The notes under the pieces were generated by a model. The model worked only from the letters and a program-made list of their open reading frames with translations. It had not been told where the DNA came from and did not search any database. A stretch of DNA of 64,000 nt, taken from Parasitella parasitica NRRL 2501. Lineage: Eukaryota; Fungi; Mucoromycota. Each line of letters begins with the position of its first letter. Position 1 is the first letter of the stretch. Positions 59,603-64,000 of the stretch are shown in pieces. The DNA lies in contig MU619252.1 of the NCBI GenBank assembly GCA_025201805.1, positions 124,001 to 188,000 on the forward strand, in the 5' to 3' direction. Made by a program: the position numbers and the translations under genes.

Positions 59603-59955
59603 GCTTCTCGTGTAGAGCTTGTTGCCAATGATATGATGAAAATATCATAAAAATAATGCTTTAAACGTATCATAAATAGTTACCCAAAATATCATACATA
59701 CGTTCATATATATCTTTTTAATAAACAAAATTACAACAGATTACAATATTGAATAGTTTCAGAATACATGTAAGTATCAAGGAATTGGGCCATTTTGTAC
59801 GGTACAGTCTTTTTATGGTTTCAGAAAAAAAAGTTCAAGTAAATGATAAAGGTCCTGGTGATTGTGATTATATATTAGGGCTTCTGTAACAAAATCTTTT
59901 ATCCCTGAAAAAAGCTGAGAGAATTGTCTCCAAGGATACATTACGCAAATTGGTA

Positions 59956-60131
59956 CAGTGCGGCCGGGAAATATTGTCCGTTTTACAAAAATAAATGGCG
60001 ATTACAAAAAAATATTTGTCGTTTACCAGAAAATAAATGGCGCTAACTAGAAAATGATCGGCCGTTTCTCAATTTTTATTGGCCATTTCTCAGATTTACT
60101 ATGGCCGTTTTACGAATTCACTTTGTCGGTT
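59956..60131 (+). repeat. Left TIR (176 bp)
   Basis: Reverse complement of 61654-61829. Confidence 0.95.
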
Positions 60132-60175
60132 GCCATGATGTAACTGTCTTTTCTTCACTTTTGTAACTAAACAAT

Positions 60176-61597
60176 ATGAGTAGAAATACATTTTATTATG
60201 AAGACGGTCAAGAAAATATCTATGATGAGCGTGGAGAGCGGGTTATTGATCCAATGGAAGATGTATTGACGAATATAAATGATCCCAACATAGTGCTTGA
60301 AACGATTACCAGCCAGAAAGCATATTTGGCCCTTAAACCACAAGACAAAGAAGTCATTATGAAAGATGTTTCTGTAAAGCCTTTCAAAGTTGCTAAATAT
60401 GTCTCGGACCGCGCTTACAAGCAGCACAATGATCTCACAAGAGAAACATTTATTGAAAGAATGCTTGAAGGCCCTGTGGAAAGAGGAAGGGTAACAGCAG
60501 CAGCGAAAGAGCTGGGTATAAACCCTCGTACCGCTATGCGTTGGTGGAAGCACTATAACGAGACGGGTGAGGTAACCTACAAGAAATCTGAAAAAAACGC
60601 AGGCAGACCCAGTTCCTTTACTGGAGAACATGAGAAGTATATCCAGGATGTTATTGAAAAAGACTCGCAGCTTTGTGCTGACGATATCATTGATATGTTG
60701 ACAACCAAGTTTAAAGACTTCAAAATCTCGAAGTCTCAAATGAATGATCATCTGAGGAACAATATGCTCATATCCATCAAGAAGCCAACCTTCGACCCCA
60801 AGGCGAGAAACTCTCCCGAAAACTTGCAAAAACGATATGAATGGTTCATGAATTGGAAGGATTCTGATCTTGATTACGGCACAAACTGCGTCTTCATTGA
60901 TGAGGCTGGATTCAATATCAACATGAGGAGCAATTGGGCTAGATCAGCAGTAGGAACACCTGCCATTGTTGATATTGCAAAGACTCGCTCCCCCTCACAT
61001 ACTATCATTGGCGCCATTCATTCTTCTAGTGTTCTTCACGTTGTCATGAAAAAGCCTCCACCAAGAAAGCCAAGAGGACAGAAGCCTCAAACAATTCAAG
61101 CAGAGAAGTCAAAGAAAAGAAAGCTTGCGAGGGGCAAAGAGCAGACAGGAGGGATTGTCATTGAGGAGCCCACCATAGAGTATGTGGAAGTTGAGAAAGA
61201 AGAAACCAAGCCGCCTTCCAAAGGTACAACCACAGCTCACTTTGTGAAATTCATGAATGAGCTTCTCGATATTATGGACATGGATGCAAATCTGAAGGGC
61301 AGTTACCTTGTTATGGATAATTGTACTATTCATAAGTCGCATCCAATGATGAGAAAGATTGAGAGCAGAGGATATCGAGTGATGCATCTACCTCCTTATT
61401 CTCCAGAACTGAACCCAATTGAGCAGTTTTGGGCCATTGTAAAAGGAAAGATGAAGCGCCATAGGCTGCTAAGCGAAGAGAACTTATCACAAAGAATTGC
61501 TGATGCATGCAACGATGTACGCGTAAGTGATCTCCGTGGATTTTGTAGACACTCGAAGCGCCAAATCATCAATTGCCTGAATAAAACAGAATTCTAA
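60176..61597 (+). CDS. DD34E transposase (Tc1/IS630, DDE_3), 473 aa
   Basis: HTH (AAAKELGINPRTAMRWW), GRP, FIDEAGF, VMDN, LPPYSPELNPIE; 34 residues between the second D and the E. Confidence 0.96.
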   Translation: MSRNTFYYEDGQENIYDERGERVIDPMEDVLTNINDPNIVLETITSQKAYLALKPQDKEVIMKDVSVKPFKVAKYVSDRAYKQHNDLTRETFIERMLEGPVERGRVTAAAKELGINPRTAMRWWKHYNETGEVTYKKSEKNAGRPSSFTGEHEKYIQDVIEKDSQLCADDIIDMLTTKFKDFKISKSQMNDHLRNNMLISIKKPTFDPKARNSPENLQKRYEWFMNWKDSDLDYGTNCVFIDEAGFNINMRSNWARSAVGTPAIVDIAKTRSPSHTIIGAIHSSSVLHVVMKKPPPRKPRGQKPQTIQAEKSKKRKLARGKEQTGGIVIEEPTIEYVEVEKEETKPPSKGTTTAHFVKFMNELLDIMDMDANLKGSYLVMDNCTIHKSHPMMRKIESRGYRVMHLPPYSPELNPIEQFWAIVKGKMKRHRLLSEENLSQRIADACNDVRVSDLRGFCRHSKRQIINCLNKTEF

Positions 61598-61653
61598 GAG
61601 TTAGTTGGCTTACGTCCATGCTTCTACAACATAGCGAACAGAACAGTCTAGTA

Positions 61654-61829
61654 AACCGACAAAGTGAATTCGTAAAACGGCCATAGTAAATCTGAGAAAT
61701 GGCCAATAAAAATTGAGGAACGGCCGATCATTTTCTAGTTAGCGCCATTTATTTTCTGGTAAACGACAAATATTTTTTTGTAATCGCCATTTATTTTTGT
61801 AAAACGGACAATATTTCCCGGCCGCACTG
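61654..61829 (-). repeat. Right TIR (176 bp)
   Basis: Reverse complement of 59956-60131. Confidence 0.95.
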
Positions 61830-61973
61830 TAGTTGTTAATTCAAGCGTTTGGACAAAGATAACAAAGCAAGTACCATGTAAAGAATCTATCTGCGTTTGT
61901 TAGCTAACTGATTTGATAGATTTTGGTTCATAAAACTTGGAATCCGCTAATTAGCATCTGGACACAGGAGCGA

Positions 61974-62700
61974 TACAGTCTATGTCAGTCTATCCCACTG
62001 CTTGTTGTTCACCACCTCCAGCCAACCGGATGGTGCAGCTTTTAACGGTAGCTTTAGGCGACTTTGTTCTAAGCGCGTAGCTTTTGACTTAAGTTAAAAG
62101 TTGCGTGTTAGAGAAAGGGCATTCTGAACAGGTCAGTACTCGGGCAAAAACGATTTGGAGCAGGCGATACAGTCTATGTCAGTCTATCCCACTGCTTGTT
62201 GTTCACCACCTCCAGCCAACCGGATGGTGCAGCTTTTAACGGTAGCTTTAGGCGACTTTGTTCTAAGCGCGTAGCTTTTGCTTTTTGTCAAAAGTTGCGT
62301 GTTAGAGAAAGGGCATTCTGAACGGGTCAGTATCGAACCACTTTATGGCAAATGACAATATCAAGAAGGTAAAAACAGAGTCAAACACGTATACTATGCT
62401 ATCCTGTTACTAATGGTTTTTTTTTAACTCTTGATCCATATATATACCAATATCTACGTTTAGGCAATACTGGTATCCCAAGTACAGTCTATGTCAGTCT
62501 ACCCCACTGCTTGTTGTTCACCACCTCCAGCCAACCGGATGGTGCAGCTTTTAACGGTAGCTTCAGGCGACTTTGTTCTAAGCGCGTAGCTTTTGCTTTT
62601 TGTCAAAAGTTGCGTGTTAGAGAAAGGGCATTCTGAACGGGTCAGTACGCGGGCAAAAATCATTTGGGGCAGGCGATACAGTCTATGTCAGCCTGTTCAC
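61974..62700 (+). repeat. Array of three 161-bp TA-flanked cassettes (61976-62136, 62170-62330, 62485-62645) plus a left-end-only copy (62679-62700)
   Basis: Each copy reads TA|CAGTCTATGTCAG...GGTCAG|TA; spacers between the TAs are 29, 150 and 29 bp. Confidence 0.95.
61976..62136 (+). ncRNA. Candidate structured non-coding RNA cassette (representative copy; family unknown)
   Basis: Long G-U-rich hairpin TCTAA.CGCGTAGCTTTTG/YAAAAGTTGCGTGTTAGA plus CACCA/TGGTG and ACTG/CAGT stems; differences between copies mostly fall in loops or preserve pairing. Confidence 0.45.
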
Positions 62701-64000
62701 TATAGAAAATATGTATTGCAATGATAAATAAATTTTTATGAACATTTCCCCTCACTATTGCTGCAATAATTTTTTTGAATATGGGTCAACGTGCTCGAAA
62801 ATAAACAAGCCGGCGAATGGGGATCTCTTGAGTTAAAAAAAATGTCTTTTACAAACAGGCAACTGGCAACTGATGGAGTACAGTCAACTTTACAATACGT
62901 CATACACAGTACGATGAGATCGAGATATAATTACATTAAAACATTTTATGGTGATATGTGTGGGAGAACACTGCTACAACCTGTTGCTGTCAAAAATTGC
63001 TGTAAAAGGAATGTCTGATTTACTTTAAGGTGTATTGATGCATACATTGCTCATGGTGCCAAACTGGGACTTCATGATTTTTTTTTTTTTTTTGCGAATT
63101 TACAAGACGTTAATTTGCGATTTTATTCATTCAAACTGTGTTTTTTGTTTCTTTTCTATTCTCATTATGAAGATTATTATTACAACTATGCAATTTTCAT
63201 TTGTGTTTGTCAGCGTGAGCAAATCTTCAATTATCTACAGTCCCAGCTTTAATTTTTCAAGTGTAACAATCAGCAAATTATGAAAGTCATTTGCATGTTT
63301 TGTGTTCCTGAAATAACATGCATGAAGTTTTGACATTATTAAGGTTTCAAGTGCATTCTCGGTCAATCCCAGTCTGCTAATCTTTAAATCCTTTCGTTTA
63401 ATGCTTCTCGTTATCTGAAAATCAACAGCTTCGCTGGTTATAGCCCTGTTAAAAATTTTCTCGTCAACTAATAAGTCCGTTATAATTCGTCATTGGATAC
63501 ACTTTCTTCACTATCAGATATCCTCGTCGGGTATTCCAAGTACTTGGCTAACGAATAATTTACGTCTAATTTATCAATTTACTAAACTACGTCCCTCCAT
63601 TCTGAAAATATTATAGAGAGTATTTCATCTTCTGTTTACTAGTATGGATCGTCGTCCGCCTCAATTCGCGAATGTCGGCCGATACTTGCTTACAATCCAT
63701 TTTTCTACCGAACGATGCTCTCTCCTTAATCTAGAAATCTGCTCAAATCACCCAGTTTATGTCTTTACATCTATAGAGAATCTTCACTTCGTATTCGTTC
63801 TCGCACTCCACCGAAATAAGTCGATTCCTCACTTTGAATTGATCCTATTTGAAGCAAGTTAAACAGGGCCATATCATTTTTCAGCCTTTCTTTGTCCGTG
63901 CTTTTATTCCTCCTCATATGCCTCTTTAGGTTCTCACCCTTTCAGTCCTGTTCTTCACCATCGTATAAATTCCTTTCCTTTTCTTCTTGTTTCGAGATTC

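Follow-up and report, generated by a model that had tools for sequence, protein, structure and literature searches.

Folded RNA units that occur in tandem are known from polycistronic precursors and from long non-coding RNAs (lncRNAs), e.g., the clusters of small nucleolar RNAs (snoRNAs) and of microRNAs (miRNAs) and the A-repeats of Xist. A different kind of structured RNA, the omegaRNA, is encoded at the 3' end of a nuclease gene within the end of a transposon, and its guide is supplied by the DNA that flanks it. To our knowledge, the structured non-coding RNAs of Mucorales are almost unexplored. The published omegaRNA of Parasitella parasitica Fanzor1 (PpFz1) has 71 nt, and its TAM is ATN (PMC11423790).

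We analysed a stretch of 64,000 nucleotides of P. parasitica NRRL 2501 (contig MU619252.1, positions 124,001 to 188,000 of the forward strand), hereafter the window, in which three near-identical cassettes follow one another. A reading made from the sequence alone had proposed a CRISPR-like array in which protein-less scaffolds of a Fanzor omegaRNA alternate with guides. Our results lead us elsewhere: it is rather probable that the array is part of a spliced, most likely non-coding RNA gene on the + strand, made of tandem RNA modules of about 165 nt. From sequence comparisons, these modules appear to form an RNA family of this fungus that is small, has not been described before and has no link to Fanzor. 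Like snoRNA and miRNA clusters and lncRNAs of the Xist A-repeat type, the locus combines a spliced transcript, several copies of a folded unit and less conserved linkers. Unlike them, it has no snoRNA boxes, miRNA-type hairpin or Rfam match, and its unit has three helices and is closed by a helix that we call P1. The likeness to the PpFz1 omegaRNA is that both are structured non-coding RNAs of the same species in which conservation ends sharply on the 3' side and variable sequence follows. However, the modules are at no Fanzor locus, have no motif in common with that omegaRNA, are carried by a spliced multi-module transcript, and have inherited linkers as their 3' flanks. The features of the array are the following (R1 is a covariance model of the whole cassette, A8 an alignment of the modules, and X7 and X15 are sequencing runs described below).

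61867..61919, + strand: tentative GC..AG intron with a CTAAC branch site, from the 11-letter loose end of one X15 contig only.
61974..62138, + strand: module c1, 165 nt with both TAs, from the repeat search and the alignments; R1 gives it 201 bits.
62060..62134, + strand: P1-P2-P3 domain of c1, with the 5' strand of P1 at 62060-62069 and the 3' strand at 62126-62134, from alignment A8.
62139..62167, + strand: short linker s1, 29 nt, within the X7 RNA contig 62100-62217 that joins c1 to c2.
62168..62332, + strand: module c2, from R1; the RNA contig 62188-62323 crosses it unbroken.
62254..62328, + strand: P1-P2-P3 domain of c2, from the alignment, the pair counts and RNAalifold.
62333..62482, + strand: long linker, 150 nt, comprising the end of an exon, an intron and the start of the next exon; its 3' part is homologous to the linker between modules A and B of the C33 locus.
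62369..62463, + strand: GT..AG intron, 95 nt, spliced out in RNA contigs of X7 and X15.
62483..62647, + strand: module c3, from the repeat search, the alignment, R1 and RNA contigs.
62569..62643, + strand: P1-P2-P3 domain of c3, from the alignment, the pair counts and RNAalifold.
62648..62676, + strand: short linker s3, 29 nt, identical to s1 at 25 of 29 positions and covered by no X7 RNA contig.
62677..62691, + strand: stub of a fourth module, its first 15 nt, from the sequence and the alignment.

The three cassettes were delimited by a repeat search, by Tandem Repeats Finder (period 194, 96% matches) and by two alignments. They are 165 nt long, or 161 nt between the TAs, their mean column identity is 98%, and each of them starts with TA-CAGT and ends with GTCAG-TA. 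The linkers s1 and s3 differ at four of their 29 positions, the long linker stands 3' of c2, and the stub is all there is of a fourth copy. The GC content is 41-46%, and GATA is found directly 5' of three of the four module starts. A repeat search of 60500-64000 returned zero inverted repeats. The sequence-only reading had thus described the array accurately in several respects: the near-identical, TA-bounded copies starting with CAGT, the lack of an inverted right end, the GATA on three of four left flanks, and the sharp 3' boundary of conservation with more variable linkers behind it. It had also called the cassette structured on the + strand and free of coding sequence. The first part stands, since the fold of the + strand beats its shuffles (z = -2.25; the - strand does not, z = +0.75) and covariation agrees; the second needs a correction, as each cassette contains an ATG-started open reading frame (ORF) of 32 aa, though this is not conserved in the relatives described below. 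In the assembly that we searched (32.8 Mb in 450 contigs, with the window on contig C16), c1-c3 were the only close copies, whether by BLAST with the 194-bp unit, by a 27-nt pattern allowing 3 mismatches or by R1. The BLASTN comparison that had been suggested, run here with the 194-bp unit, accordingly found three close copies, all at this locus.

A complete Tc1/mariner element lies 140 bp upstream of the array (59954-61831, TA at both ends). It carries terminal inverted repeats (TIRs) of 178 nt (59954-60131 and 61654-61831) that are 99% complementary and contain internal repeats of 21-22 bp, and an intact ORF for a DDE_3 transposase of 473 aa (60176-61597). A sister organism lacks the element here, as its DNA contig of run X10 departs from the window at 61829. 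The insertion is therefore recent, and the RNA gene may have had its promoter displaced by it. A cassette resembles a Tc1/mariner miniature element (MITE) or solo end in having TA on both sides and in starting with CAGT like the upstream element. It differs in having no inverted right end, in not being dispersed, and in that its paralogs start with CACAGCC and without TA. The TIR of the neighbouring element starts with TACAGTGCGG, of which only TACAGT is common to the cassette, and we found no similarity between the cassette and the 178-nt TIRs. We thus rejected a MITE or a solo TIR, given zero inverted repeats and only three close copies, all in tandem here; the asymmetric MITE that had been offered as an alternative falls with it, as there are no TIRs and no dispersal.

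The array is not the only place in the genome where the module occurs. With covariance models, and in one case by eye, we count 11 modules at five loci (the window and contigs C47, C33, C29 and C196). The model R2 was built from the 3' half and includes the C47 module, and R3 from all eight modules of the window, C47 and C33. The four loci outside the window are the following.

C47, 149258-149325: one module, E 1.8e-21 with R3, first a weak match to R1.
C33, 206053-206839, - strand: array of four modules, about 1e-23 each, found with R2.
C29, 198854-198914: one module, E 3.8e-8 with R3.
C196, 29889-29949: one module, E 1.4e-4 with R3; the second C196 module was spotted by eye.

Aligned with the window, the C47 module has a shorter hairpin whose arms are altered yet still complementary. 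The C33 locus repeats the layout of the window twice over: module, short linker, module, long linker with a GT..AG intron (introns at C47, C33, C29 and C196 are predicted only). The window and C33 agree in the 3' portion of their long linkers (ATnCTGGTAnCCnAAG, then ACAG.C), which makes the 150-nt stretch an ancestral linker rather than an insertion; the claim that this spacer is unrelated to the rest does not hold, since it contains a spliced intron and shares its 3' part with C33. Judged from its sequence, the array is a higher-order repeat. The 3' flanks of the C29 module and of C33_B2, one of the C33 modules, are also homologous. As paralogous modules start with CACAGCC and not with TACAGT, the TA, CAGT and GATA are not conserved, and would be incidental letters of the repeat unit. 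The neighbouring ORFs of the five loci have no Pfam family in common, and none of the loci has a match to PF04754 (Rpn-like nuclease) nearby. The C33 array has near it, at a distance of about 0.7 kb and on the other strand, a remnant of a Tc1-like transposase (..MDDVKFYKSP..; L027:71-355 on C33). We found no relatives outside this genome and its close kin: a scan of metagenomes with a degenerate pattern of the core gave chance matches only, and two loci that it returned were rejected because neither fits the model.

The alignment of the modules (A8) reveals a common fold in their 3' part, of about 75 nt: helix P1 closes it off, and inside it are two hairpins, P2, which is variable, and P3, which is small. 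P1 has 10 bp and a bulged U; its 5' strand stands directly before UAAGC, its 3' strand (GAAC-AGGUC) directly before CAGUA, and between them it encloses UAAG, P2 and P3. The length of P2 varies from 3 to 15 bp among modules, and P3 has 3 bp and a loop of 8 nt (AAGGGCAU in the window). In A8, 91.5% of the pair cells are paired (28-48% when the partners are slid), eight pairs have changed on both sides, six of them among the 10 of P1, and none of 500 shuffles reaches the observed pairing values, statistics that are modest because P1 was first spotted by eye on the same sequences and because only about 4-5 independent lineages stand behind the 11 modules. When run blind on A8, RNAalifold returned P1 and P2 and added P3, with A-U/G-C covariation. 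One whole base pair has been deleted in the window, so that columns 4 and 80, which pair with each other, are both gapped there; a change at 62130 makes the pair U-A in c1 and U.G in c2 and c3; and in the C29 module the pairing within the inner part of P1 is poor. The check for covariation that had been called for thus came out in favour of a conserved structure, of which the proposed pairing of an internal ACTG with the terminal CAGT is not part. An extended single hairpin was considered and rejected: it is close in energy, though it fits less well than P1 plus P2 in pair counts. Only the + strand can take the P1-P2-P3 fold, because many of its pairs are G.U. Conservation stops 2-3 nt past the closure of P1, at what had been called the 3' TA, and the sequence after it drifts faster because the conserved domain ends where P1 closes. 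The differences between c1 and the other two cassettes cluster at the tip of P2 (62087-62095), where they turn the c1 sequence into a perfect palindrome, resembling the outcome of a template-switch mutation at a quasi-palindrome.

For the expression of the array we compared Logan contigs of four runs (X4, X7, X10 and X15) with positions 61400-64000. The RNA evidence consists of assembled contigs, which give no transcript ends, strand or abundance. X7 (organism A) is an RNA run by a guessed label, and X15 is an independent metatranscriptome of a fungus like organism E. We took X7 as RNA because it behaves as such: its contigs leave 61835-62095 and 62618-63052 uncovered and show spliced joints elsewhere. 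Both X7 (depth 231) and X15 (depth 10.9) contain the joint 62368/62464, from which a 95-nt GT..AG intron (62369-62463) has been removed within the 150-nt linker between c2 and c3. Other X7 contigs run from the end of c1 through s1 into the start of c2 (62100-62217), traverse c2 without a break (62188-62323), and lead from c2 across the intron into c3 (62294-62366 spliced to 62462-62532). The array locus is transcribed, and the intron of the 150-nt linker is spliced out, which bears out the expectation of an expressed RNA cassette. The RNA is on the + strand, as indicated by the GT..AG orientation of the intron and the many G.U pairs, and since it is spliced we presume that RNA polymerase II makes it. 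The transcript may end near the end of c3, as X7 has no contig on s3. On the other side, X15 also covers 61920-62031, and the 11-letter loose end of its contig matches 61856-61866, which tentatively suggests a second intron, GC..AG, at 61867-61919 upstream of c1. An intron inside the modules themselves (5' splice site, TTCTAAG branch, TTAG) was rejected for the window, where the contig 62188-62323 is unbroken.

Taken with the conserved fold, these contigs make the module an orphan structured non-coding RNA: it is transcribed, and its fold is kept by compensatory changes. DNA contigs of organism E have the identical arrangement of c1, s1, c2, linker, c3 and stub, with one difference from the window in 195 cassette positions vs. 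six in 150 positions of the long linker. In DNA of organism B (run X4), contigs start at 62303 and none lies on 61835-62302, i.e., on the left flank, c1 and s1; this strain may have a shorter array or other upstream sequence, holes between contigs proving nothing. Downstream of the array, X7 contigs also document a convergent spliced transcript on the - strand (63117-63966; joint 63843/63937 with CT..AC ends, that is, GT..AG on the - strand), in which no clear long ORF is visible.

A search for known RNA families with Rfam 15 (cmscan with permissive filters) gave no ribozyme match at E<=1 in 60000-64000 or at E<=5 in the four related loci. The models included hammerhead, twister, pistol, hatchet and HDV-like ribozymes, among others, and none matches the modules, so the suggestion of a retrozyme-like repeat fails too. 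The wider check against Rfam was equally negative, as no family matches the array (within 60000-64000) or the four related loci. There is no Rfam snoRNA match on the modules, and, by eye, the window, C47 and C196 lack the box-like words of C33. A weak match to the fungal C/D snoRNA Afu_198 (62934-63090, 21.3 bits, E 0.56) lies outside the array, downstream of it. On C47, a phosphomethylpyrimidine (HMP-P) kinase gene of the thiamine pathway (L038:9207-9926, about 150.2 kb) follows the module at a distance of about 770 nt, with a poly(A) signal and another ORF in between. We scanned the genome with the TPP riboswitch model RF00059 and obtained matches on C95, C48, C161 and C8 only, none of them at the five loci. 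Three are candidate TPP riboswitches that score 37-51 bits, under the Rfam cut-off of 54.3 (C95:9194-9301, C48:57606-57729 and C161:54304-54403). That the module itself is a TPP riboswitch was rejected, with the RF00059 matches elsewhere and the C47 module separated from the HMP-P kinase gene.

The proposal of an omegaRNA array can be confronted with the Fanzor genes of the same genome, which has at least 41 matches to PF07282 (Cas12f1-like/TnpB zinc ribbon). Several Fanzor matches stand in long open frames, e.g., at C45:13964 (1124 aa) and C46:132749 (1096 aa). No PF07282 match was found near the window on C16, C47:149 kb, C29:199 kb or C196:30 kb, and the sole match on C33 is 200 kb away from the C33 array; at none of the five loci does the cassette lie downstream of a Fanzor/TnpB ORF, as had been anticipated. 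Conversely, R1 found nothing in ten Fanzor loci, and the genome searches with R1-R3 touch no Fanzor locus. The signature words of the module are absent from the published omegaRNAs of GtFz1, SpuFz1 and PpFz1, and the scaffold core of the PpFz1 omegaRNA is neither in the window nor, within 3 mismatches, in this assembly. The linkers do not behave as guides either. Genome matches to two kinds of 20-nt 'guide' are no commoner than those to reversed controls, and the 'guides' are inherited linker sequence, as seen from the 25 of 29 positions identical between s1 and s3 and from the homologous 3' flanks of C33_B2 and C29. Finally, GATA was a poor choice of TAM: that of PpFz1 is ATN, and the GATA letters belong to the repeat unit and do not recur in the paralogs. 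The identification as an omegaRNA scaffold, the CRISPR-like array and the TAM are thus all contradicted, and the sequence-only reading fails on its own terms, because no genomic copy is at a Fanzor/TnpB locus, a finding that it had itself named as speaking against it.

Whether the transcript could instead be a messenger depends on two frames. Besides the 32-aa ORF, a frame of 49 aa runs across the splice (ATG at 62345, 8 codons in exon 1 as counted by eye, 41 codons in exon 2, stop at 62587-62589). The translation of exon 2 has no homologue in a word-indexed search, and the matches of an exhaustive search were discarded as an artefact of a 16-fold repeat (P0001) and an unrelated bacterial protein. 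In every module one frame, f0, stays open throughout the core, and no ATG ORF is kept in all lineages in any frame. Variable columns are distributed over the three codon positions as 12/18, 12/18 and 13/18, with no codon periodicity. The lack of homologues, of a conserved ATG ORF and of a codon-position pattern makes coding, on sequence grounds, unlikely.

These observations allow the competing explanations to be weighed against that of a non-coding gene of tandem modules. It is very improbable that the transcript is an mRNA for the 49-aa peptide or the 32-aa cassette ORF: an ATG frame does continue over the splice junction, and every cassette has its ATG ORF, but these have no real homologues, the cassette ORF is not kept in C47, C33, C29 or C196, the variable columns ignore codon position, and coding cannot explain compensatory changes in helices. 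Nor does a neutral tandem duplication of 194 bp, in intergenic or old transposon-derived DNA, functionless and transcribed by chance, fare much better in our judgement. The TRF period of 194, the 15-nt stub, of a kind typical of unequal exchange between short direct repeats, and the young Tc1/mariner element 140 bp upstream would all suit such an origin. Against it, diverged paralogs retain the fold through pair changes on both sides, sister organisms differ less in the cassettes than in the linker, the arrangement is identical in organism E, and the cassette has no TIRs and is dissimilar to the Tc1 element; we hold it to be quite improbable. Least credible of all, at the very bottom of what we would entertain, are protein-less Fanzor scaffolds that carry guides, act in trans and use GATA as the TAM. 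The genome is indeed rich in Fanzor (at least 41 zinc-ribbon matches), and such scaffolds would share with the modules a fold, expression from the + strand and a more variable sequence behind each copy. Yet the modules are away from Fanzor loci, which in turn do not match our models, they are unlike the published PpFz1 omegaRNA with its ATN TAM, their 3' flanks are inherited among paralogs and not specific to a site, the target counts equal those of the reversed patterns, and GATA belongs to the repeat unit and is missing in the paralogs.

Two further explanations also take the module to be a functional RNA and concern its mode of action. The spliced transcript could be a polycistronic precursor, cut between modules into stable RNAs of about 165 nt, with the P1-closed domain as the mature RNA. 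P1 clamps each module, conservation stops right past P1, and the X7 contigs end at c3 and do not enter s3, all of which would fit; however, RNA contigs span both module junctions, to the eye the loci have no conserved C/D or H/ACA boxes, and Rfam gives no match, which leaves this possible but unlikely. Alternatively, each module could be a cis-acting or catalytic element that, in the manner of a riboswitch or as a ribozyme of a new class, senses a ligand or cleaves itself and so controls the processing of its own transcript. The closing helix, the conserved nucleotides in the junction and loop and the variable peripheral hairpin speak for such an element; moreover, the modules adjoin introns, and one of them is upstream of a thiamine-pathway gene. 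But there is no Rfam ribozyme or riboswitch match, the TPP riboswitch candidates are at other loci, a poly(A) signal and an ORF split the C47 module from the kinase gene, and the RNA contigs run through the modules uncut, and so we regard it as improbable.

For the non-coding gene of tandem modules that we favour, a simple scenario can be proposed. The functional unit would be the module, a self-contained three-helix domain offering its junction and the P3 loop to a protein or RNA partner, and tandem copies would raise the valency for this partner. The linkers would be free to drift, which would halt conservation 2-3 nt past P1. The array may have grown by duplication and unequal exchange of the higher-order unit that it has in common with C33, and the near-identity of c1-c3 would then result from recent homogenisation.

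The idea of a eukaryotic CRISPR-like array of Fanzor guides is attractive, but it is unsupported and we have removed it. What takes its place can be tested: an expressed, spliced RNA with tandem folded domains, with no Rfam family and with compensatory evolution at five loci. The case also suggests that sharp edges of conservation beside 'variable spacers' can mark the edges of an RNA domain rather than the acquisition of guides. The closing helix, the variable hairpin and the conserved letters of the junction and loop provide a good start for the search of a partner. More tentatively, and short of what we would call probable, the P1-P2-P3 module may be an undescribed functional RNA domain of Mucorales, either binding a protein or a ligand or with a new catalytic activity, that is used in tandem in spliced transcripts. 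If this is true, the module would belong to a layer of RNA biology that has gone unrecognised in early-diverging fungi.
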